This document shows positions 4,775 to 59,050 of a DNA stretch of 64,000 nt, one piece after another. This DNA is from Selaginella moellendorffii. Lineage: Eukaryota; Plantae; Lycopodiophyta. Position numbers and translations under genes: made by a program. Below the pieces are notes generated by a model, which did no database searches, was not told the DNA's origin, and saw only the letters and a list, made by a program, of their open reading frames with translations. Position 1 is the stretch's first letter. Each line of letters starts with the position of its first letter. The DNA lies in the NCBI RefSeq assembly GCF_000143415.4, contig NW_003314279.1, forward strand, positions 2,007,090 to 2,071,089. The letters are read 5' to 3'.

Positions 4775-6592
4775 TTAGTGGCGTTCCATCTCGCGGAATA
4801 TGGCCGTGAGGGACGGAGACAAGCGAGGAAGATTTCGGAAAACCTGTTGCAAAGGTGGTGGTGGTCAGTGTTTTGGTAATAGGAGCAATGTACCCATAGC
4901 TTGAAGCAGGCATCGATGGTCACTGGAACTATCGCCACGAAGGAAGATATGGAAGCCTCGTTGGCCTTCATGCCGTAGTGCTCGAGGAAAAGGTTCACCA
5001 CGGTCACCCAGCCCGACTCGGAATGGTACCTAGAAAGTGGAAACATCGCTTGGTTTCATACTGTTCACAAGGCAAAGAAAACACAAGATGGTACCCGAGG
5101 AATATGTCCGAGAAAAGAATGATAAAGAATGCCTTCCCAATGTCTGAAAGATTGCTGAAGAGACGAATCCCTGAGTAACTCATGAGCTCCACCTGATGGA
5201 AGTGAGAAGTTAAACACAAGAGCCATGAGAATTCCTGTTGTGACGTACTTGCACTGGATTGAGTATGATCAGGAGCATCAACACTACGCCTGCCACATCG
5301 GACCAGACGCTTGCAAAATTGCTTCGATTCTCTGCTCTGACTTCCTCGACCAATTCTAGCCTGGAAGAGCAACTTGAGGGGAGAACAAAGAAGCAAAGCC
5401 TGGAAACCAAGAAACTTACGCTTCGTCGTGAAGATGCTGCGTTAGTTTCTCTTCGGAAATGGGAGGAGCGATTCCAATCCTGACCTCGAACATCAAACGC
5501 TTCTCTTCGTCCTCCAGCGGAGGAACCACTCTCTTGGTCATTTGTGAGTCCGTGACGTCGAATGCCCTGGCCGCGAAAGGTACGAGCTCGACATATCTAC
5601 ACAGGACTAAAAGCAAAGCTGTGAGTGACAAAACCACGAGGAGCACAGATTTCCTACCTCTTTAAGAAGGGGACCAGCACGCAGTCATGCACGACGAAGT
5701 CTGCAAGCCACGGTATCAAAATGAGGCACGCAGCGAACTTCACCTGAAACATAAACACTGGACAAATAAATCTCTCGAGATCTTGAAAGGAAGAACACCA
5801 ACTTACTGTTGATCTTGCCGCGGACCTCGCAAATCCCCTCTCGAACTTGTTCTCCTGGTGCCACTCGAGAGGCTCTTGGAACAAATCCGAGAATGGCCCG
5901 GTTGCTTTCCTAGCCTTTCCAAAGCTATCCAGCTCCGACCGAAGGTACTTAAGCTCCTCTTCTTTCTTGTGGAGTAGCTCCTGCTCGATCTCGTCAACTT
6001 CTCCCCGAGAAGAAACTTCTTTGTCCCTGGATTTCTCCCAGCTCTCACCATCCAGCCAATCTTCCCAGTTATCACTGCCGGGGTCTCGTCCCCTCTTTCG
6101 GTACCAGCGGAGCTCGTTGATGGCGTCAACTCGCTGCTTCCAGGATTTAATCTCCTCGTCGTCGAGCATCATGCGTCCAATCTCGTCCATGGCGGCCTCG
6201 TCGTTGTGCTCTCTCCACCAGTCGAAGTCGTCGAGCAAGAGTTTCTTCCACCAGCTTTCTCTCCTAGGACGCTTTGCATGTATCCTCCATTCCAAGCCCC
6301 TGGCAATTAACCTTCTCTTCGCGCTGGAGAAGCTAGAGTTTCCACTGCCGCTGCCGCTACTAGCTACAAAAATTCGCCTCGCATTCCTCGAGCTCCTGGC
6401 AATCGATCCTCTAGTAGTCCTACAGAAATGCGAGTGCCCGAAGCGATCGGATACCAAAATCCGCTTCCAATTGCTTGGAAACTCTGCTTGAATCCACACG
6501 AATCTCTGGCTCCTCGCTCCTGAGCTCTTGAAATCGGTGGAGAGCTTACCGGGGCGAAGAATTCCATCTCCCCAGGGCTGCTCGCAACGCAT
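4775..6592 (-). CDS. DLDG1: Nuclear-encoded CemA/Ycf10-like chloroplast envelope proton-extrusion protein (DLDG1-like), multi-exon
   Basis: Spliced motifs FSNLSDIGKAFFIILFSDIFLGYHSESGW and VPVTIDACFKLW; last exon VFRNLPRLSPSLTAIFREMERH* (stop 4775-4777); start Met approximate. Confidence 0.85.
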
Positions 6593-6777: not shown

Positions 6778-9700
6778 CTACAACATCGGTGGAGCAGACT
6801 CTGAGCTCTCAGGCACGTCGCTCAAGAATGTATCCCTGCTCTTCACTTCTGCTCGCTCCCTGTCCTCGTCGTCACGACCCGATGATCTTTGCTCTTGCTG
6901 CTGCTCTTCTTGGTCCTGCTGTTCTTGCTGCTGCTGCTGCTCTTGCTCGTGATCATCTTTCTTCTGTTCTCCTTGCTCTCCTCCTCCATCTCCTGTTGCT
7001 GGCGTTGTCGTCGTCGCCTCGCTGCTTGCAAACACCATGCTCCTAAACGTTTCAATCAATCCTCTGGCTCCACCGGAAGAAGATGAAGCAGCGGCGCCTC
7101 TCCCTCCTCCTGGGTCTGTGTAGTCACGACGGCGTGAAACGAGAGTTGGAAGAACTGTTTTTGACGAGGACGAACAATCCAGTTGTTGGTGGTGGACTCT
7201 TTTCGACACCTGGATCACTCTGCTTATACGAGCGAACACCCAAAGAGAGGTTAACAAAGCCATCGTTGCTCTTCGCTCTTTCCGCTCTATGCATGGCTTT
7301 GCTTTTACGTACCTTGCGACTCGGGGAAAATAAAACCGTGGACTTCCTGCTTCTCCTTCTCAACGATTGTAGAATTGGTTGAATAAGGACTCCTACGCAT
7401 GCCCTGGTCATGGATCCAGTTAGAAAGGCGAGCTTGAGCTTGCAAAGAAAGGCCTTTACCTGTCTAAACTTCCCTCCGTGGATGGCTGGCGTGAAGGTGC
7501 ATTCGGCCATCTCTTGCTTTTGCTTCTCTTTTCGCAACGCCTCGACTCTGGCAATCCGTTCTTGTCTATCCAACAAGATCAGTTTGTACCATTGACTCCT
7601 AGTGCTGCAAACAGGAAGGAATCCGAGAGTCAGGAGCATAAAGAGTTTTAAGAAACCGAGAACCAAAACAGTGCTCGTCACGCACCTAAACTTTCTCCTA
7701 CGAGCAGCAAGCGAGCGAGAGAGGCGGCACATCTTAAACTGGAACGGGAACTTCTCGTCCTTCTTCCGTAGCTTGAAAACGTTATGCAAGCCACTGGATA
7801 CAATCTTTTTCTGCAAAGTCGCGTGAAGCAACTCCGAGTGTCAGCTGATCAAACCAAGCGAAAAACGAAACAGTTGAAACCAAGTTCCATTACCTGCGCT
7901 GTTTGCATGAGTTTTTGGAACGTATCGTATGACAATGAACCTTTGCCATCGTCCATGCCCATGACAATCTTAATCTCGTCCACCACTTCGTCCGAGAACA
8001 AGGCAGTGTCGGCTTTTTCGAGATCAACGTAGCCACTCTGAATTTTTTTCACAAAATAGAGCGCGTTAAAGTTCTTCTGTTAGTTGAAACGACACTTCTA
8101 CAAACCTTATCTTTGTCGAGATGATCAAAGATTTGTTTCAACCTCCTTTCCTTGAGGTGATCCAGCAGCTGCCCGGATTTCGTACCAACGTAGTGTGACT
8201 TGGCAAGCTCAATCCTGTGTTGGATATCTCTGTCCATGAGAGACTTCTTCTTGTCCTCTATAGCAAATTTCATCTGATATAGAAACTCCCCGATAGGCAA
8301 ATTCCTCTGCAAAAAGAACAAGACAATGAAACATCCACAACTCAACAAGCTATGAAACGCAAAGAACGAAAAAACGAGTACAAAATCATTCGACAAACCT
8401 CGCCAACAGGCTGTCGGCCGATTGTTGGAGTGAAAAACTCCTGACCCGTGGTCGGATCGATCAGCTTCCGACCTCCGGGTTCCAAAAGCTTTTGCTTCTT
8501 CTCGGCGAGCCTTTCAGCGTACTGCAGCAACCGATCAAAGACAGTCGTGTTGCTTTCGTCGACTTGTCCACCGTCTCCAGTTTTGTTGATGTGAGGATGA
8601 AATGTAACTCTGGACGAAGAACAAGGCGAGGGTGAGAAACACAACCAGAGAGAAGGAAAGTTCTGGTAGAAATAGAAAGAAACAAATAATTTACACACCC
8701 TTCGGGATACCATTGCATGTATTCCGCTTGACGTCGCCTCCGGTGCTCGGCATCGTAAAACAGTTGCTCGAACCGTGTCGTGGTTTGGACGTCACGACGC
8801 TCAAACGAATGCAAGTAGTTTATCCTGGGTTTGAAGGTGCACTCCATAAGCTTGGCTTCCCACAACTGAAAGAAACATCAAGCGTTTACTACGTTTTCAA
8901 GGAATGAAAGAATGCAGAGAACCAGTGTAAGTACCTCATTGCGAAGCTCTTGCAAGTGTTCCTGGTTTTGTTTGTCCTGGACTAGCCTCTCCCACACAAC
9001 TTCCGTTCTCTTCAAACGTTTGGCGAGCTTACTTCATGCACGTAACAGGGAAGGGAGGCTGCTGATTAGAAACAAAAGGAACAGCGAACAAACTAGCTTT
9101 ATAACTGTGTGTTTTGTTGCTGGAAAAGAGAAGAAGAGAAGCAAAGTTTACCTGATCTCTGGCTTGGGAGAGATGAGCTTCAACTCGTTCATCTCGTCCT
9201 CCTGCTGCTTCTTCTCGATTTGCCGCCGCCGCTCCTGGTCCTTAGCAACAGCCTCCTGGTACAAGAGCTCGCCATAGTTTTGGAACTGCTCGGCCTCTCG
9301 TTCTCTGTTTCGCATCAATCGCCTACTTCTCTGAGAGGAAACTTTGAGCGCTAGTTAAGACAAAACGCATTCTTCTTGTTGTTTACCAGTGAAGTAACCG
9401 GTCGATCCTTCACCATCTTCTCATGGTATTGTTCCGCGATCAGCCGTGCTTCTTCCTCGACCCGTTGTTTTTGCCTTATATAGTCAGTATAAAGTCTCAA
9501 GCAGAGAGCTTTCTACACGAAAGGAAAAGGAAAAAAAAAAAAAACTTTGTGAGAATGGATCAAGGTGAAAAAAACGCTCACCATCTTCTCGGATAGCTCC
9601 GCCTTCCTTTTGTGCCTCTTTTCCTTCTTCCCCCTGTCCACGGTCTTGGTAGAAAACGTAAACGTGTGTTGGAGGAGCCTCTCGGAGAACTTAGCTGGTT

Positions 9701-10157
9701 TGATCCCCCTCCTGGCGGCCTGGTACTTCCGAAACTCCTCCAGCGTTTTGGGCTTCTCCATGTAAGCTCTCCTGGCCTGGCTGATAACATCCATGGGGAC
9801 CTGCTTTTGCTTTTGCTGGCCCTTCCTCCCCCGCTGCTGCCCATGCTCCTCGGCGGCGCCACCACCACCGCCACCCTTCCCCTTTGGACTGCCACCATCG
9901 CCGCGCTGATGCTCACGGTTGATGCTCCGGAGGTTGTAGGTGATGTGCTCCGTCAATGGCACCACGAACTGGAGCGGCAGATCGTGCTGCTTGCAAAACG
10001 CGGTGGACACCTGCTCCGGGGAGTCGCCCTGCTTCAACTCGATCTGCTCCACGCGCCCGTCCTCGATCTCCACCGTGATGGAGAGAACCACGCGCGGGTC
10101 ATGGTCATCGGCCACGGACTCTTCGATCTCCCCACCGCTGGGGCTCTCGCTTGACAT
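6778..10157 (-). CDS. Multi-exon coiled-coil/EF-hand protein with repeated (C)TFxP motifs
   Basis: N-terminal VVLSITVEIEDGRVEQIELKQGDSPEQVSTAFCKQHDL; repeats ECTFKPRIN, VTFHPHIN, FFTPTIG, ECTFTPAIH; EF-hand-like QIFDHLDKDK..SGYVDL and DDGKGSLSYDTF; many short GT-AG introns. Confidence 0.75.
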
Positions 10158-10459
10158 CTGGGCGATGGCGATCGACCCACCTCGCAAAACTCAGCTTTGG
10201 ACGCCTCCCGGATCTCTCCTCCTCATCCCCGCGCCAATGCCAATCCTGGATCCTCGCCGCCGCCGCGCCGCGCCGCGATCGAGCTGAGAATGCCGCTGGG
10301 CGCCCTGTGCTAACGGAAAAGAGTGTGCTTACTGTGCTTCCAGTCGCGAGGGGTCGAGACTCTTCGGCGAGGGGCGTTCTCTTTCGACCCCCGGGTCGTT
10401 CGTTACGAGATTCTCGGTGTGACACGCATGCCCTAAAAGCCCGGCGCGCCCCACCGTGG

Positions 10460-10680
10460 CGCGCCACGTGGCCGCAACGGCCACGATCCGCCCAACGAAG
10501 AGCGATTTAACGGAATCTTTTTATAACGGTCAACGAACATTCTGTGAGGATGTGAGCTTTATCCGGGATCGAACCCGCGACGTGTCTAAACCCAGGCGAT
10601 TGGCTAGGGCTAAGCTTTTGGTGGGCATCGAACACCAGCGCGAGCGAGGGGCCGGTGTGCGGGGGCGGGGGATCGAACCC
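10460..10680. promoter_or_regulatory. Divergent promoter with a G-box and two identical B-box motifs
   Basis: CGCGCCACGTGGCC at 10460-10473; GGGATCGAACCC (minus strand GGGTTCGATCCC, B-box consensus GGTTCGANYCC) at 10565-10576 and 10669-10680. Confidence 0.6.
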
Positions 10681-10731
10681 AGTGCCGGTGCGTGTTAACA
10701 CTTTGTCGATTCGATCCGGGGACAGTTGGTC

Positions 10732-13700
10732 ATGGTGGCGGGATCACGCCGTCGCGCTAGTGAACACCTTGGCTCTTCTTCTACTAGTGGCAAGCGCCCT
10801 AGATATGGCGCCTCCTCTTCTTCCTCCACACCCACATTGCTAGGGCGCGGGGGGCGCGCCTCGTCTAGGGCTGCCAATGGCGCGCGGGCGTCGTCGTCCG
10901 TGGTGGCGGACGATCCCGATTTCGAGCCGGGGGATTCCGAGTGCGTGGCGCTGCCCGAGGATTCTTGGTTTGGGGCGGAGGAGGCGGCCGCGGCGATCGT
11001 TCCAGTTGTCGAGGATGCCGATGTCTCTGCTGCTACTGCCGCAGCTTCATCGTCGGCCATGCCGCTGTGCTCCGGCCCTCCAGCACAGGCTTTCGCGCTC
11101 TCCGCCACTCCTCTCTACCCTAATTCCGTCAGGTGGTCTGAGGACAACCTCCTTGCAGTTGCCGCTGGACATATGGTCACTATACTGGTGAGTTCTTCCC
11201 ATGCATTGTCTTGTTCTTGCTGAAACTTTTCTTTTTTCGTGAAGAATCCAGCATCGCTGTCGGGTCCCCGGAGCTTTGTGTCCGTCTCCGTGAAGCCGAG
11301 CTTCGATTTTGGCACCGTGAATCGTGATGGTACGTGTTAAGTTCGTTCTTGTGAGTAAGCTTTTGCCTAGAGTTTGCTTTTAGAGTTAAAGCATCATTTG
11401 CTGATGCCGCTTACGCTCTCGAGGGATTCTCGTGCCGTGGTTCGCTCGATCGATTGGTCTCCGCAAGGTGTTGGATCCCATGGAGGGTACTTCTTTTTCT
11501 TTGTTCTCAAGTCACGGGCCTCTGATGTTTTCGTTTTCTCTCGGGCATTTTTTTCTTATCTTAGATGTCTTCTTGCGGTTGCCACGACAGATTATCGAGT
11601 GAAGCTGCACTCGCCACCCATGTCCGAGTATCGATCTGAGTGGATCGAGGTAAGCCACGCTTCCCTTGTTGTCTCTTGTTAACTATGAATTTGTATTGGC
11701 AGTTGTTAGACGTTTCAGAGATGATGTTTGAGTATTGTATGAAGTTTGAGTTTTTGGAAACGGAAGCATCGTTTGACATGGTACTCCTTTCGCTGACAGT
11801 TTTCTTTCATGATTGACCAGCATTTTGATAGATGTCAGATGGCATAGCTTTCAACAGAGCTTACAAGAGGCAAGGACAAATGTCCCCAGCTGAGGATCTG
11901 CTTCAGAAAAGGAGGAGAACTAGGTACTTTTACGTTTACGTACGCGGCTTTATTTTTGAAATGTTCTGCTTGTGCAGCACACCGGAGGCTTCAGTACTTG
12001 GAATGGAGGTGAGCTACTTGTTTTGTGCTGATGGTTTTGAGCTGACTCGCATCTACTCGCAGGCTGGAAATTTGCTTAACCGTCCTCCTGTTCTATGGGA
12101 TGGGCAAGCATCTCTTGCTTCAGCCCATATGAAACCTCTTGCAAACGACGGCATGGCGGATGATGCCATGAAGGTATAACTTGAATTTATCTTCAGATGA
12201 CGTAACGCCTCAATGCCAGAAACGCGGTAGAAGAGGGACTTACAGTGAACAGCTTTCAGGTGCTTGTGATTTTAAATTGTTTTCTCTACGCTTCTAAGCA
12301 GGTTATGTTCTCGTAGGCTCTGCTGATGTTGAAGGTTTCGACGACGGAAAACAAACTAAAAAGAGAAAACAGCTGAGAGTCAAAGATGGACAGCTCTCGA
12401 ATCTAACCGTCACCGCGCCCCAATACATGACAAGGAGTTCAATGCTGGCCTCTCTAGCCTTGGCATGGTCCTCGAAGTGCTCTTGCTGTGATAGCAACTC
12501 GCGAGTTTTTAGTGCTGTTTTTCTGTCGGTTGGGACGAAGTCTGGCATGGTTGGCTTCTGGCGGCTATCAACACCTGACGTATACTCGGTTGAAAAAGTG
12601 CTACCGCTACCAGACGTAAGCTTTATCGGCTTCTTAAACGCACACGAGTCCTGGGTGACTGCACTTGATTGGGCGGCTGGAGCTTCAACTGATCAAGTTC
12701 TTCTGGCAACCGGAAGCTCTGATGGGAGGTACAGTTCTACCTCGTATCAGTCTGTATCTAATGGATCTCACTCATGTTACAGTGTCAAGTTGTGGCAAGG
12801 AGATACAAGAGTATTGATGCAGTGGCAACCGTCGGCGCTTTTCCTCCCCTGGACACTTCTCTTTCAGGTGAGGGAACTATCTTGCATTTAGTTTAGTAAA
12901 TGACTAATGAAAACTCAGGTTACTGGTGTCGACAGTGTGCCAGTGACGTCTTTGGCCTTGAAATATTCAATTGAGGCGGATAATATTCTTATTGTCGTTG
13001 GAAAAGGATCCGGTAGCGTTTTAGCTTGTGAATTAACAAGTGCAGGCCAGTGCTCTCGCAGGGCTTGCCTTCCACGGGCTCACGACCAAGCGGTATGCTT
13101 CCAAATATGTGCTTTCATGGTTTGATGTGCTTCGAGTTCCAGGTTATGGGAGTTTGCTGGTCTGCAGACAAAGATCAGATATACTCGTGTGGCCAGGTAT
13201 GTTAACATTTGTTAAGCCACTAAGTATAAAGTCGTCTTTGACAGGATAACATGCTTCAACTGTGGGAATTCGCTGATACGCAACTCGTAGCCGTGGAGAC
13301 TTCCCTTTTGGCATCTGAGGTCCCGGCAACTGCTCCTGACGTGTGTAAAACATTGCAATTGTACCCACACTAAACTTCTAAACCTTACAGCTTCCGGCAT
13401 CGGCGTTGGAATCGTTTTTTGGTGTTGCACTGTCACCTGCAAATCTTTCTCTTGCAATGGTAGGATAGGTACTTAAAATTCTCTCTCTCACTTTTCCATG
13501 TGCAGGTAAGAGGAATTGCTGCTGAAGCTGTAGATCCGATGTATCAATCCAGGTACCAATGTTGTTTTATTTTTTTGTTGGCTAGAAATTTAAGATATTG
13601 TTTTTCGAAATCGCAGGTCACAAAAGGGTATTGTACAACTGGTCTGGGTCGGACAAGACGAAAATATCGTAAAAGCTGATTGTTTCGACGATCCGAGTGC

Positions 13701-14747
13701 TGGTAGATCGGCTTATACTATTGCTGCAAGCTGGGAGACAAAAATCATATCGGCATTCTCTCATCTAGATCGTCGAGCCTCGTTCGTCCTATGGGATTTG
13801 CTGACAGTTCTATCATTTCTCAAGCAACTCTGTGGAGGAGAGATACTGGGGTCCGTTTTTCAGAAATGGCTCTCAAATTGGAGTTTCGTAAACACGGGTA
13901 CTATCGAGGCTTGCTGCTGGTCAACAGAAGCTCTCAAGACGTGCTTACCAAGCTTGAGTTGTCGATGCCTACAGACAATGATCGTGATCTTTCGAAGGAT
14001 AATCCTACAGGACTTGAAACTTGGACTACTTACAGAAGGGTTGGAAGCCATGCACAATTCTGGATCACGTACCCAGTTAACTTCAGAGCAGCAAACGTGG
14101 CTGGAAATCCTTTGGTGCATGGAGCACGAGCTAAGAGAGAGGCTGATGTTCCTGGCTTTGCTCACGGCTTTGTGGTGCAAGTCCCCTCAAGCAGAGAATG
14201 CCCAAGCTAGTGTCAAGATGGAAGCCAGGCTACCAACAGCATTTTTGATGTCCGACTGGATCCTCTTGAACTCGTCAAAGGTTTCTCCTCAACTGCTGCA
14301 GCTCGCCACTGAAGTGCATAAAGTTTATAACAGGTAGCTTCTTTTTTGTGATTGCTGTCAAGATGTTAATGCGTTTTCGGTTGTGGCAGATCTGGATCAA
14401 GTTCACAAGAGCGCTGCAGCTACTGCGAGCAAACGGTTCCCTTGGAGTACCTTGAAGTTGGCTATTGCCGCGCAGAGGGAATCAACACGAGAATAAACCA
14501 TCGGTTGCAGCGGTGCTCGGCTTCCTTGCAGATCTCCCTCCCTGGTCCGTCGTGGTATTGTACGTGCTGCGGTCGAAACGCCTTCCAACAGGTTCCAGAG
14601 TTTTTTTTCTCCTTGACGTCGAGGGTCCAGATTGAGAGGCTGCCTTCGATTGTGGTGCTGGAGCCCGTTGTGTCGCGGTGTCCCTTTTGCGGAATCCTGA
14701 TGCAGAGGATCTTACCGGAGTTTTTCCTCACACCGTCTCTGGTGTAA
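10732..14747 (+). CDS. WD40 protein, TFIIIC 90-kDa/delta (tauB) subunit-like, with C-terminal zinc finger; multi-exon
   Basis: PLYPNSVRWSEDNLLAVAAGHMVTIL, VRSIDWSPQG, AHESWVTALDW..LLATGSSDG.VKLW; C-terminal Cys cluster (CYCEQTVP..HRLQRCSASL..WYCTCC..CPFCGILMQR), typical of plant TFIIIC-delta/zf-TFIIIC proteins. Confidence 0.8.
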
Positions 14748-14952: not shown

Positions 14953-17418
14953 ATGTTTTTCTCTCTAGATCACGAGTTTGTGAGCTGTTACTGCAAGGAC
15001 AAGACCGAGTTTGCTACTCTTCTCAGGGAATGTGGAAACTCGAGAGCTCTAGCGCGGGGTAAGCGTGTCCATTCTCTTCTTACTTCTGCCGGATATGGAG
15101 ACGATGCGATCCTGTGCAACTTGGTCGTGCAGATGTATGGCAAGTGCGGTAACTTGGATGATGCCCGCTCCGTCTTCGATCGTATTCCTGCCAAGAACAT
15201 CTACTCGTGGAACATCATGCTGTCAGCTTACCAGCGTGCCGGTTGTGGAGTTTCGGCACTCAAGCTGTTGCGGGAGATGGATTTGGATGGTGTTCGACCG
15301 GACAGTGTAACTTACGTAAGTTATGTCACCGCTTGTTCATCGGCTGGTGCAGTCGAGCAGGGAAAGTTTGCTCATTCCAGGATCGCTGCTACTGGGCACT
15401 TCGCAGCGGACGTTTCCGTGGGGAATTCGCTGGTGAACATGTATGGAAAGTTCGGACTCGTGGAGGAAGCCAGGACGGTCTTTGAGAGCATGGTCGCAAG
15501 GAATACAGTGACTTGGAACACGCTTATCGGAGCTTATACCCAGAACGGGCATAGCAGGGAGGCGGTTGTGCTATACAAGCTGGCGAAAGAGAGCGGTGTG
15601 AAGATGAGCTATGTGACTTACGTGGTGGCTCTTGGAGCCTGTTCCACTCTCGGGCAAGGCAGGGAAGTTCACTCGGACATCGTCGCTGCGACGTGCGAGC
15701 TCAACGCTACGGTGGAAAACGCTTTGATCGGATGCTACTCCAGGTGCCAGAGTTTGGAAGATGCCCGGCTCGTTTTCAACTCCATGCAGTGCCGGAAGAA
15801 CGCCGTCTCTTGGAACTCTATGATCTCGGCCTGTGTCGCGAACGGGCGTCCTGACGAAGCTCTTGAGATTTACAGGAGGATGGACTCGAGGCCTGACAGG
15901 GTGACTTTCATGGGTGTCCTCGGTGCCTGCTCTAGTCTTCCAGAGGGAAGAGAGATCCAGCAGCGTATCAAGGCAGAAGGCTTGGAGACTAATGCCTGTG
16001 TGGCCAACGCGCTGATAACCATGTACGGGAGGTGTGGAAGCTTGGTGGACGCGAGAGAAGTCTTTGACGCGATGCCGGGGCGAGATATCATCTCCTGGAA
16101 CGCTCTGATCAACGCTCATGCTCAAAACGGCGATGGAAGAGGTGCTCTCGGGCTTTACCACGAGCTTCAAGCGGACGACATGCTAGAGCCGGATGGTGTG
16201 ACTTTCGTGGCAGTTCTCGGTGCCTGCGTAGCCTGCAAAGACTTCAAACAAGGTGACGAGGTCTCCAAGCGGATCATTCGTAGCGGGATCTACAAGGACG
16301 ACGTTGTTCTGGCCACAGCCCTCGTGAGCATGCTTGGAAAGTTTGGCGAGATGGAACAGGCGAGGACAGTGTTTAGCGGCATGGCTAAAAGGACAGCCAT
16401 CTCCTGGAACGCCATGCTTGCGGCATACTGTGACAACGGGCACGCTCGCAAAGCTCTGGAGCTCTACCACGCAATGGACGTGGATCCGGACGAGGTGACT
16501 TACATGACTGTCGCGGAGGCGTGCTCGAGCTCGCGAGATCTTCAAGAGGCTGGAGCTCTACACGAGCGTGCTGCTGCGTCCGGCATGCTGGCTCATGTCC
16601 CCCTGGCCAACGCTCTGGTCGCGATGTATGGCAAGTGCCAGCGCCTGGACGAAGCAACGCGAGTTTTCGAAGGGATTCCTCGCCGGAGCCTCGTCTCGTG
16701 GAACTCCATGATCGCGGCCTGTGTGGACAACGGGGAGAACGCCCGAGCTGTGGAGCTGTTCAAAGAAATGGAGCCGCCACCCGACGACGTAACTTTCGTG
16801 AGCGTCTTCGCGGCGTGCTCCAACCTTGGCGACTTGGCTATGGCGAGGGAAGCTCACGGAGCATTTGGATCCAGGGAGCTGCTCGATGACACCGTGGGAA
16901 CTTCGCTCGTGAGCATGTATGGGAGGTGTGGGAGCCTCGCCGACGCTCGAGCGGTGTTTAAGAGGATGCCGAGGAGGGACGCGACGAGCTGGACGAGCAT
17001 GATCGTGGCGTGTGCTCGCGGCGGCGATGGCGTTGCCGGGGTGGCGGCGTTCTACGCGATGGGACTGGAGGGAGTGGCTCCCGACGAGATCAGCTTCCTG
17101 GCGGTGCTCTTCTGCTGCAGCCACACGGGGCTGGGGCGCCAAGGCCGGGAGTTCTTCGTGCTCATGCTTGAGGAGCTGGGAGCTCGGGCCGAGCACTACG
17201 TGTGCATGGTCGACCTGGTTGGTCGGCTTGGATGGGTGGAGGAGGCACAGAGGCTCTTGGAAGCCATGCCTTTCCAGGCCGGTTCCATCGCGTGGCTGGC
17301 GCTGCTGGGGTCTTGCAACGTCCAGAGGAGCTCCCGGCGTGGAGCGCTGGCGGCCGAGCGCGTGATCGAGCTGGAGCTGGAGGAAGCGAGGCGTGGCAGC
17401 GATTTGCAAGGTTTGTGA
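14953..17418 (+). CDS. PLS-class (E-subclass) PPR protein, intronless, 821 aa
   Basis: P-L-S triplets (NLVVQMYGKCGNLDDARSVFDRI, KNIYSWNIMLSAY, PDSVTYVS); ends HYVCMVDLVGRLG..MPFQAGSIAWLALLGSC; no DYW domain. Confidence 0.95.
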   Translation: MFFSLDHEFVSCYCKDKTEFATLLRECGNSRALARGKRVHSLLTSAGYGDDAILCNLVVQMYGKCGNLDDARSVFDRIPAKNIYSWNIMLSAYQRAGCGVSALKLLREMDLDGVRPDSVTYVSYVTACSSAGAVEQGKFAHSRIAATGHFAADVSVGNSLVNMYGKFGLVEEARTVFESMVARNTVTWNTLIGAYTQNGHSREAVVLYKLAKESGVKMSYVTYVVALGACSTLGQGREVHSDIVAATCELNATVENALIGCYSRCQSLEDARLVFNSMQCRKNAVSWNSMISACVANGRPDEALEIYRRMDSRPDRVTFMGVLGACSSLPEGREIQQRIKAEGLETNACVANALITMYGRCGSLVDAREVFDAMPGRDIISWNALINAHAQNGDGRGALGLYHELQADDMLEPDGVTFVAVLGACVACKDFKQGDEVSKRIIRSGIYKDDVVLATALVSMLGKFGEMEQARTVFSGMAKRTAISWNAMLAAYCDNGHARKALELYHAMDVDPDEVTYMTVAEACSSSRDLQEAGALHERAAASGMLAHVPLANALVAMYGKCQRLDEATRVFEGIPRRSLVSWNSMIAACVDNGENARAVELFKEMEPPPDDVTFVSVFAACSNLGDLAMAREAHGAFGSRELLDDTVGTSLVSMYGRCGSLADARAVFKRMPRRDATSWTSMIVACARGGDGVAGVAAFYAMGLEGVAPDEISFLAVLFCCSHTGLGRQGREFFVLMLEELGARAEHYVCMVDLVGRLGWVEEAQRLLEAMPFQAGSIAWLALLGSCNVQRSSRRGALAAERVIELELEEARRGSDLQGL

Positions 17419-32916: not shown

Positions 32917-33898
32917 AGCCGGGTTTCTTTCTTCCTTTTGGCTCTCGCAACACCAGGTAATACGCTCTCATCTCACATGAAAAGCTTTACAGCAAAAGCT
33001 CTGCAGATTTGTCGTGCGTGCCGTGCTGAATAGAAAAGCATCAAGTGGAGAAGGCTCACGTTGCAAAAGTTGGAAAGGCTGCTGGATGCGATAGTACGTC
33101 TTTTTTTCTCCTCCTGCATTCTTTTTGTTCCAAGTTTTTGTCGGAGTGAGGAGCTTCCCTTTGTTCTTTCTATGAGAGAGAAATTGTGCAAGCAAAGAAA
33201 TCCAAGAGAATGATCAAAAGTTAGCATTAAAAGCAATGGAATCCAGAATGGCATTGGCAAGCTGGCCTGGGCATCTTCTTAATTGTTCGTCACCCTGTAG
33301 GGAATCGAACCTGGGTGGAGGCATTTAAAAGCCCCCATGGGTAGGGCAAAGAAATTTTAATACGGGGCAATTTTTTTTGTTACTGGCAGAGAGGGGAGGG
33401 GACGATAGCTGCGCTCGCGCTGCGAATGGAGGCGCTGGCTCTCGCATCATCCACATCGCCGCTGTGGATCTTCTCCATTTCCTCCTCGTCCTCGCCGCTG
33501 GCTATGCCGTTGTGGAGGAGCGCGCCGCCGATGTTGCTGCTGCCGTTGCTGGACGGGTTCTTTGGCGCCAGGAGCGCGGCGATTAGGTCAAGCGGGCGTG
33601 CGTGAGGGAGGATTCGCGCAATGCACAAGAGGTACACACAGATGGGCCGGGAGCAAATGCTGCTGCCCAATTTATTATAGTTACCACAGGGGGAAAGAGA
33701 GGAAGAGATTGTAGTTTATCATAGGCTATAGTTCCTTGATTTTTTCTTCATTCTGGTAGAGGATTCTGGTAGAGGCAGCGGCGGGGTTAATCCGGGCTAT
33801 AGTTTCTAATGGGTTAGGCCTGGGAAGAAAGAAAAAAAAACAAAGAGACAAGGGGAGATAGCGAGAAAAACTGGGTGTTAGATGATGGAGATAGGAGC

Positions 33899-34967
33899 AT
33901 GCAGGAGGTGCACGGGAGCATTGTGACACCAACACTGGTTTTGTCGCTGCTGGATTTGGATCCGAGCAGCAAGAACAGGTTGGAGGGGTGGCACTCTCCC
34001 GAGAGGCCCGACGAAGACGACGAGCTCGACTCACACGAAGACGAAGAAGAAGAAGAAGAAGAAGAAGAAGTGGACGAAGGATTGGGAGTTTTGGTAGCGA
34101 ACACAAAGTGTGTGCTCGCTGGCTTCCAAAAGGAGACGTGGGTGCTCCCACTTGCTGGGCTCTTGTTGCTGCTGGGGTGCCGGGGACGAGACGACACCCA
34201 TCGCTACGAGCTCCAGCAATCCGTCGTCCGCCAAGGTGGAAAATCCCGCGGGCCGTGGAGGTGGCGGCGGTGGCGGCAGCAGCAGCAGCAGCAGCAGCAG
34301 GACGGGGGAGTCGCCTATGCCGCCGTCGGCGCAGCCATCGTCCATGCCACCTCCGATTCCAGTTCCAGCGTTCCTCAGCAGCGACGAGCCCGTGCACCCG
34401 ACCAATGGCGAGCGGAACTCGTCGGCGGCGTCGTCCGAGAGTGGGAAGAGTGCTGGCGGGGACGCTGCCGGAGGAGGAGGAGAAGGCGAAGTGAAGAAGG
34501 AGGTGGCGCGGCTGCCCGAAGTGAAACCGGGGCCGGGAGGAATCCGGAGGAAGAGATCAGGTGTTTTGGCCAAGAGGAAGATTACGTGGGTGGATGATCA
34601 CGGAGTGGACATAGCTCAAATCAAGGAGTTCGAGCCCAGGTACAACTCTTCCTTTTTCTTGTTTTTTTCTTCCCATTTTCTCTCTTTTTTTTGCTGCGAT
34701 TCTTTTGGTGGTTGTTCTTGTTTGACTCTTACTCTCTGCGTCAAGATTCCGTCAGCTTTAGTGGGCTGGTCTGGACGTGCGTGTTTTGACTCGGGCATTT
34801 TTCCTTTTCCGTTCTCCACTGTTCTTGCTCTTTTACCTTTTATCCGTTCCCAGCTTTTTGGGTGTTCTCGTTGGTGTTCTTAGAAGTTTTAGTGCAGTGA
34901 CTCCGAGGACTCCGATGAAGAGGGCGATGACGAATCCCCCCAGTCGTGCTCCTGCGTTATACAATAG
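33899..34967 (+). CDS. Small plant protein with an RVxF-type motif and C-terminal CaaX box; 5' structure uncertain
   Basis: LASKRRRGCSHLLGSCCCWG..KRKITWVDDHGVDIAQIKEFEP, intron about 34640-34897, last exon SDSEDSDEEGDDESPQSCSCVIQ*; the upstream ATG (33899) is in a different frame from the conserved part. Confidence 0.7.
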
Positions 34968-57866: not shown

Positions 57867-59050
57867 GCCAACTAGAAAAGGGGCAATTACTTGATAAGAG
57901 AGCCATTAATGGCTATTTTATCCCTATTTATCCCCCAAGGTTCCAAGGATCCACGATGACAGTATATTCAAATCTCATCCCATGATCACATGCGCTACAC
58001 TCACCCCCCCTTCAGAGATGTCAATGTCCTCATTGACTATTGACTAATGTAGACCAGCTGAGCCAAGAGTCCTCGTCCTTTATGCTAGTCAATGTCCTCA
58101 TTGACTATTGACTAGCGTAGACCAGCTAAGCCAAGAGTCCTTGTCCTCATTGACTATTGACTAGCATAGACCAGCTGAGCCAAGAGCCCCCTTCAGAGAG
58201 GACATTGCCCTTCAGAGCTGTCAATGTCAGTGTTAGTCTACAGACTCTATATCAGAGCTGTCAATATCAGTGTTAGTCTATAAACTCTATATCAGAGCTG
58301 TCAATGTTAGTGTGTAGAAACTAGTCTACAGAAGAAGGCAACTAGTCATCCACCCGTACCACAGTCCCACACAAGAGGAAGGATGTACTGCACCCGTACC
58401 ACAGTCCCACACAAGAGGAAGGACGTACTTGCCCTTCAGAGCTGTCAATGTCAATGTTAGTCTATAGACTCTGTATCAGAGCTGTCAATGTCAGTGTTAG
58501 TCTATAAACTCTATATTAGAGCTGTCAATGTTAGTGTGTAGAGACTAGTCTACAGAGGAAGGCAACTAGTCATCCACCCGTACCACAGTCCCACACAAGA
58601 GGAAGGACGTACTGCACTTGTACCACAGTCCCACACAAGAGGAAGGCACACAAGAGGAAGGATGTACCGCAATTACTGCAGTCCTATGGTGGATACCTTC
58701 ATCCGTGGATACTCCACACAAGAGAATGGACGTACGTATGGATATCCAATACGTATAATTTCAAATTTAGAGGTAGGTATATTTTCACAATTTAAGGGTA
58801 AAAATATACCTTGCTCAAGGGTATATTATATTTTTAAGTAGCTACTAATCAATGGGAATCGAACTCGTGCCATTTGCTCCGATACCAACTGTAGCACACC
58901 TTATTTCTCTCCCCTTAAGCCAACTAGAAAAGAGGTAATTGCTTGATGAGAGAGCCTTTAGTGGCTATTTTATCCCCATTTATCCCCAAGGTTCCAAGGA
59001 TCCACAGTGATAGTATATCCAAATCTCATCCCATGATCACATGCGCTACA
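57838..59050 (-). mobile_element. Complete non-autonomous LTR element (TRIM)
   Basis: LTRs 57838-57999 and 58890-59050 (TGTAGC...GCTACA); 5-bp TSD ATCAC (57833-57837 and 59051-59055); PBS TGGTATCGGAGC at 58876-58887; PPT GAAGGGGGGGTGAG at 58000-58013; non-coding interior. Confidence 0.95.

Follow-up and report, generated by a model that had tools for sequence, protein, structure and literature searches.

B-box-like motifs at the TFIIIC90 gene of Selaginella moellendorffii and several other land plants suggest TFIIIC self-control as in yeast

Our analysis of a 64-kb stretch of the Selaginella moellendorffii genome (hereafter, the window) revealed that two identical B-boxes, a pair far beyond chance expectation, directly precede the coding region of a gene classed by homology as TFIIIC90, a subunit of the tauB module of TFIIIC. 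B-box-like motifs are present at the orthologous gene of several other land plants as well, and this pattern of sequence suggests that TFIIIC may control itself in plants as it does in yeast. The data favor a functional element over a chance match or a relic.

A B-box cluster at the start of a TFIIIC90 gene

Searching the whole window for the 12-mer GGGATCGAACCC returned two occurrences, both on the plus strand (10565-10576 and 10669-10680), and none of 100 dinucleotide-preserving shuffles of the window reproduced the two copies. Read on the minus strand, each copy is GGGTTCGATCCC, with an exact match to the B-box consensus GGTTCGANYCC at 10565-10575 (B-box 1) and at 10669-10679 (B-box 2); across the window the consensus is matched three times, against 0.24 matches expected. 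An earlier note on this DNA had drawn attention to the identical 12-mers at 10565 and 10669 and to the fit of their minus strand to GGTTCGANYCC, which the search and the shuffles confirmed. It had also placed the copies about 155 and 50 bp before the ATG at 10732; the measured distances are 156 and 52 bp from the ends of the 12-mers (167 and 63 bp from their starts). The same note had raised the frequency of the motif in other promoters as a point to consider, and none of those in the 64 kb of the window or in the 16-kb locus of the other haplotype carries it. A further strict B-box, GGTTCGATTCC, lies on the minus strand at 33301-33311 as a lone match, and the near-matches AGTTCGAGCCC and AGTTCGATTCC are located at 34628-34637 and 58855-58864; the numbers of both kinds are in line with chance, and no tRNA was detectable around any of the three.

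The pair is accompanied by weaker elements. More specifically, a degenerate B-box on the minus strand (TGTTCGATGCC, 10624-10635) has two mismatches, at positions 52 and 60, and retains six of the six bases that human TFIIIC220 contacts base-specifically (i.e., G53, T55, C56, G57, C61, and C62; position 54 has no such contact). A weak B-box-like match on the plus strand (GATTCGATCCG, 10708-10718), also with two mismatches, is probably not significant by itself. Finally, a remnant of a third perfect B-box is preserved on the minus strand at 10588-10593 (AAACCC on the plus strand), and its intact counterpart exists in the other haplotype. That allele (GL377599.1, locus L002) is 97% identical over 450 bp upstream of the gene and contains perfect B-boxes at three positions relative to the ATG (-179, -150, and -63). 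The intact middle copy, GTGGCTGGGATCGAACCC, lies opposite the remnant; in the window haplotype it was removed by a 12-bp deletion between 10587 and 10588 together with a G>A change. As one copy has been lost in the window haplotype, single copies are dispensable. The copies are alike over only 12 to 16 nt, namely, GGGATCGAACCC and, in two copies, a subsequent AG; no alignment extends into their flanks. Identical cores within unrelated flanks indicate that the 12-mer was preserved or re-created rather than carried along in a recent larger duplication. In a word-index protein search, no TFIIIC90 ortholog was retrieved from other Selaginella species.

The gene downstream of the cluster (LOC112346884; plus strand, 10732-14747) is of the TFIIIC90/GTF3C4 (yeast tau60) type, contains many introns of ~50 to 80 bp, and encodes 1,030 aa. 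The window represents the GL377583.1 haplotype: the 621 aligned bp of locus L001 match it without any difference, and L001 position 6001 corresponds to window position 10732. The gene product is XP_024532494.1 (P0092), whose first 151 residues are 100% identical to the translation of window exon 1. Exon-wise searches yielded weak, although concordant, matches in Pfam (TFIIIC_delta, E = 0.0039; zf-TFIIIC, E = 0.0026) and no match in the PDB. In place of joined exons, we relied on P0092 and P0001, full-length proteins from the database. P0092 matched TFIIIC_delta, a beta-propeller domain, with 72.9 bits (E = 4e-20; Pfam gathering cutoff, 27); its score for the C-terminal zf-TFIIIC, 21.4 bits, is below the cutoff of 23 (E = 0.0026 for the last exon alone). 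The cysteines and histidine of zf-TFIIIC are invariant in 13 plant orthologs. A phmmer search with one exon (12319-12726) against a representative library recovered the 1,030-aa S. moellendorffii protein at 99% identity along with ~90 plant relatives, which carry the UniRef name "TFIIIC 90kDa subunit N-terminal domain-containing" and one of which is called "like AT3G49400" in one source. Moreover, a profile built from the 13 plant orthologs matched the human GTF3C4 chain 8cli_B along one collinear stretch of ~260 residues (E = 7.9e-12); the single sequence matched the same chain with E = 4.7e-4. The winged helices of TFIIIC220 that read the B-box are, in the human structure, held by a rigid tauB core made up of TFIIIC90 (yeast tau60) and TFIIIC110. 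By its domain and profile matches, the gene at 10732 is thus the ortholog of TFIIIC90/GTF3C4/tau60 and a tauB subunit gene, upholding the assignment made in the earlier note. An intron-less 821-aa ORF (14953-17418) follows 200 bp past the TFIIIC90 stop codon and overlaps a 761-aa PPR gene annotated in L001; synteny from TFIIIC90 to the PPR gene is common to both haplotypes.

We then asked of the sites whether they belong to a tRNA gene. ARAGORN found no tRNA gene in the 64-kb window, and Rfam found no tRNA in 9500-11500, even at E ≤ 10; the ARAGORN calls obtained at thresholds of 70 to 80% were scattered and mutually overlapping, with one on the wrong strand, and were treated as noise. Near the sites, we detected neither an A-box with up to two mismatches nor a minus-strand run of four T, and no SINE or tRNA signal appeared at any threshold that separates signal from noise. 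With ARAGORN, permissive Rfam, and the A-box and terminator scans all empty, a tRNA gene or relic was rejected, in agreement with the earlier observation that neither copy sits in a tRNA cloverleaf or has a clear A-box. Likewise, the orthologous loci contained no tRNA by ARAGORN or by Rfam at permissive E-values. Having no tRNA, no A-box, and no terminator, the sites are therefore B-box-only, like ETC sites. On the plus strand the element reads GGATCGAACCC, with A at position 54, and A54 is found in the B-box of the initiator tRNA; the string of this B-box occurs together with "initiator tRNA" in three papers.

To position the sites relative to transcripts, contigs of four runs (from four studies) were placed on 9300-12800. 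The contigs are spliced at GT..AG introns of 46 to 78 bp and are therefore RNA-derived. Those of the TFIIIC90 mRNA have 5' ends at 10604, 10624, 10638, and 10668, positions that do not fix a transcription start site exactly; the contig end at 10668 abuts adapter sequence and is therefore a real fragment end. The divergent neighbor gene (minus strand, 6778-10157), whose 813-aa product has only faint EF-hand/PFU matches, gave mRNA contig 5' ends at 10362, 10386, 10395 (adapter), and 10409. As had been noted earlier, the sites lie between divergent genes: the start codons of the pair (10157 on the minus strand and 10732 on the plus strand) are 574 bp apart, their transcript 5' ends are ~200 bp apart, and the gap free of contigs in all four runs (10410-10603) is taken as the shared core promoter. 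This gap contains a TATA-like TTTTTATAA (10518-10526) and a perfect 14-bp palindrome, CGTGGCGCGCCACG (10455-10468), overlapping a CACGTG G-box (10465-10470); the palindrome and CACGTG are a possible shared regulatory site of the bidirectional promoter. B-box 1 is located in the gap, 28 to 39 bp upstream of the farthest mRNA 5' end (10604), the degenerate copy falls within the initiation zone, and B-box 2 belongs to the 5' UTR, such that the sites span about -40 to about +75 around the TFIIIC90 mRNA contig 5' ends. The first coding exon of the divergent gene is longer by 6 nt (CGCCAC, inserted after 9856) in the RNA contigs from some runs, and RNA contigs also show several SNPs over the 5' region of this gene (10185-10267); insertion and SNPs probably represent the other haplotype. 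Further transcribed SNPs are located at, for example, 10791, 11034, and 11037.

B-box-like elements in orthologous promoters

Orthologous loci with up to 6 kb of upstream sequence were obtained from Diphasiastrum (two paralogs), Calypogeia, Nymphaea, Setaria, Brassica oleracea, and Sphagnum, and extra plant contigs were collected by scanning metagenomes with a conserved N-terminal block. The metagenome contigs were assigned by their exon-1 peptide: L022/L023 derive from a eudicot closest to Acacia (78%), L024 is Caryophyllales-like (92% to Chenopodium), and L011 to L016 and L018 are Sphagnum again and add nothing new. The remaining loci were uninformative, namely, a conifer-like transcript without promoter (L010), a locus cut at the contig end (L019), the second Diphasiastrum paralog (L004; upstream flank mostly N and first exon missing), and L020/L021, in which a chimeric exon-1 copy lacks its own start. 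For each promoter, the minimum mismatch count to the B-box in the interval -300 to -1 was compared with first-order Markov simulations of that promoter, giving the p values below.

The eudicot contigs L022/L023 carry a perfect B-box, GGGTTCGAATCCC, at -55 on the minus strand (p = 0.0007 for L022); it is the textbook GGTTCGAATCC and differs from the Selaginella copies at position 59. In Diphasiastrum, GGATCGATCCC at -25 on the minus strand has one mismatch (p = 0.012) and is the sole GNTCGANYCC match in 45 kb. The Caryophyllales-like L024 has AGTTCGACTCC at -174 on the minus strand, again with one mismatch (p = 0.038). Elements with two mismatches were found in Brassica (AGTTCGAATCG at -90, minus strand; p = 0.31), in Sphagnum (one plus-strand site; p = 0.32), and in Calypogeia, where AGGTCGATCCC occurs on the plus strand at -277 and -199 inside a repeated 18-mer and TGTTCGATCTC on the minus strand at -79 (p = 0.37 for the promoter). 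Nothing with up to two mismatches was present within -300 to -1 in Nymphaea (p = 0.97) or Setaria (p = 0.54). Neither the A54 variant of Diphasiastrum nor the G54 variant of Calypogeia alters any of G53, T55, C56, G57, C61, and C62. In Selaginella, Diphasiastrum, L022, L024, and Brassica, the best site runs antisense to the gene. The outcome of the conservation check proposed in the earlier note is partly positive: a second lycophyte and three eudicots have B-box-like elements at the gene, and Nymphaea, Setaria, and Sphagnum have nothing convincing.

Combining the eight promoters other than that of Selaginella by Fisher's method gave p = 0.0015, a value obtained with a -300 limit picked after part of the data had been seen and resting mainly on three loci, two of which are metagenome contigs placed by exon-1 peptide only. 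An unbiased count of 8-mers shared by at least three of seven promoters gave 8, against 0 to 15 in control windows; as this is no excess, on the 8-mer test alone the occurrence of TCGATCCC in three species is unremarkable. Moreover, in Nymphaea, Setaria, Sphagnum, Calypogeia, and Brassica, a strict B-box is lacking up to 1 kb from the ATG, and the element is therefore neither universal nor strictly conserved. A tentative and somewhat doubtful proposal is that an antisense B-box shortly before the TFIIIC90 start codon is old and recurrent in land plants, from lycophytes to eudicots (in the latter sometimes joined to a telo-box), where it would act as a sensor of TFIIIC abundance that sets the level of the tauB scaffold subunit. 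Plants would then have their own version of TFC6 autoregulation, operating on a different subunit than in yeast, and their first functional ETC site.

Several features of these loci are recorded here in their own right. In Calypogeia fissa (L005:5717-5740 and 5797-5818), the TFIIIC90 promoter contains the 18-nt TGAGGTCGATCCCGARCG twice, at a spacing of 78 bp, and the repeats hold the only two TCGATCCC 8-mers in 21 kb. In Brassica oleracea (CM002784.1; L008:1545-6001), the TFIIIC90 ortholog is arranged head-to-head with Tau95 (TFIIIC subunit 5), with 726 bp between the coding regions, thus placing two TFIIIC subunit genes on one bidirectional promoter; the pair probably corresponds to Arabidopsis AT3G49400/AT3G49410. 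The literature searched yielded nothing on the AT3G49400 promoter. The eudicot represented by L022/L023 has additional copies of TFIIIC90 exon 1 (L022:769-1065, L020:4001-4123, and L021:4001-4123), one of them 3 kb upstream on the same contig and another continuing in frame from an unrelated ORF upstream of it and having neither its own start codon nor a B-box.

What might read the cluster

TFIIIC would be the simplest reader of an exact B-box. We consider the cluster a set of putative ETC-like TFIIIC sites that would give TFIIIC90 negative feedback by promoter occlusion, a mechanism to which we assign a probability of roughly 0.4 and which is the most likely of those considered, given the ETC-like setting and the echo of yeast TFC6. 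According to this scheme, when TFIIIC is abundant, its tauB module (i.e., the winged helices of TFIIIC220 on the TFIIIC110-TFIIIC90 scaffold) would occupy the high-affinity B-boxes, and a complex of roughly 600 kDa at about -40 to +75 would hinder assembly of the pre-initiation complex or early elongation. Output of the TFIIIC90 gene would then drop, resulting in negative feedback like that of ETC6 at yeast TFC6. Bound TFIIIC could also keep the two divergent promoters apart. We infer both the occupancy by TFIIIC and the sign and size of the regulatory effect.

Four other explanations have to be weighed. A different factor might read the near-palindrome GGGWTCGAWCCC (core TCGATCC or GTTCGA), making the B-box match coincidental. 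The 12-mer is indeed nearly palindromic, and the palindrome extends to CGGG..CCCG around copy 1 and to CTGGG..CCCAG around copy 2; the Diphasiastrum site, GGATCGATCC, is a perfect palindrome, and the repeated 18-mer of Calypogeia holds GGTCGATCCC, two mismatches from a strict B-box. In addition, Brassica (L008:5903-5922) and L024 (263-282) have in common, on the minus strand, the composite AAACCCTAGTTCGA, a telo-box abutting a B-box-like element. As the telo-box is fused to the element in these two eudicots, another promoter factor, maybe one associated with the telo-box, might be the reader there. However, reading by another factor requires an exact coincidence with the 11-nt B-box consensus, three times over, at a TFIIIC subunit gene. 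The difference at position 59 between GGTTCGAATCC and the Selaginella copies is, moreover, as expected for a B-box (N at 59) and not for a fixed palindrome, and the literature searched contains no known plant element of the same sequence. On balance, we regard a different reader as unlikely.

Alternatively, the cluster, although bound by TFIIIC, might have an architectural, boundary, or positive promoter role, separating or organizing the two divergent genes without any feedback on TFIIIC90 levels. ETC sites act as insulators and tethering sites, typically in divergent intergenes, and the Selaginella cluster lies between genes whose transcript 5' ends are ~200 bp apart; furthermore, the promoter that Brassica TFIIIC90 shares with Tau95 suggests co-regulation rather than simple self-repression. 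Yet the recurrence of the element tracks the TFIIIC90 gene, the neighbors of which differ among species, and the sites adjoin the TFIIIC90 start instead of lying midway between the genes, making a role of this kind improbable.

We attach a similarly low likelihood to the copies being functionless, neutral leftovers of decayed tRNA-derived DNA or of local micro-duplications. The 12-bp indel by which the haplotypes differ in copy number would fit such an origin, as would the four of five possible T-stem pairs kept at 10669-10680 and the lack of the strict motif in several orthologous promoters. In contrast, three identical 12-mers with unrelated flanks do not fit the decay of larger duplicated units, no tRNA or SINE signal rises above noise, there are no further copies of GGGATCGAACCC in the 64 kb, and independent occurrence at the orthologs of distant plants would be unexpected.

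Lastly, the element might work at the RNA level. With its antisense orientation in most of the species found, a complement of the tRNA T-arm (GGGAUCGAACCC) would be part of the mRNA leader and might pair with tRNAs or T-loop-containing tRNA fragments, coupling the fate of TFIIIC90 mRNA to tRNA abundance; the antisense orientation of the best site in the five promoters named above and the location of B-box 2 within the transcribed 5' UTR would accord with this RNA-level role, but it is very unlikely, given that all observed mRNA 5' ends are downstream of B-box 1 and of the additional copy found in the other haplotype, that complementarity to any tRNA would amount to only ~12 nt, and that Calypogeia has its two strongest matches on the sense strand.

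Relation to known TFIIIC-binding systems

The capacity for tRNA and 5S rRNA synthesis is set by TFIIIC, which in addition organizes chromatin. Control of TFIIIC levels is known for only one subunit, in budding yeast, and ETC sites have been mapped in yeasts and animals. In the literature searched, we found no report of plant ETC sites, plant TFIIIC autoregulation, or plant TFIIIC occupancy, and the motif string appeared in tRNA-related contexts only. The cluster thus offers an easily mutated candidate for asking whether TFIIIC acts at plant Pol II promoters, as well as whether TFIIIC self-limitation is a general principle that arose repeatedly and on different subunits.

Compared with the internal promoter of tRNA genes (type 2 Pol III), the Selaginella sites have the same 11-nt B-box as elongator tRNA genes but neither a cloverleaf, an A-box 30 to 60 bp upstream, nor an oligo-T terminator. 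A B-box alone suffices for high-affinity TFIIIC binding. The sites also resemble the ETC sites of yeasts and human and the COC sites of S. pombe, which likewise have the B-box consensus with no A-box and no terminator. ETC and COC sites give no transcript and, like the Selaginella sites, prefer closely spaced divergent Pol II promoters: six of the eight yeast ETC sites, most S. pombe COC sites, and human ETC sites are in short divergent intergenes. Unlike the Selaginella candidates, which are known from sequence, an ETC site is by definition one at which TFIIIC, but neither TFIIIB nor Pol III, has been measured as bound, and the ETC sites of yeast have a conserved 10-base 3' extension, which is not seen at the Selaginella sites.

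A precedent is ETC6 at TFC6. As related in PMC3334521, TFIIIC binds this B-box of the yeast TFC6 promoter, with the effect that TBP occupancy declines and the transcript level is about halved (Kleinschmidt et al. 2011). In both cases, a B-box without a Pol III gene lies in the Pol II promoter of a tauB subunit gene, and in both the setting is a divergent intergene (TFC6-ESC2 in yeast). The yeast example comes from a budding yeast with binding measured, whereas the Selaginella example is from a land plant and is read here from DNA. The subunit is tau91 in yeast and of the TFIIIC90/tau60 type in Selaginella, and the single yeast site compares with two perfect copies (three in the other haplotype) and one degenerate copy in Selaginella. 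What is new relative to the yeast TFC6 case is therefore the subunit involved, the copy number, and the lineage.
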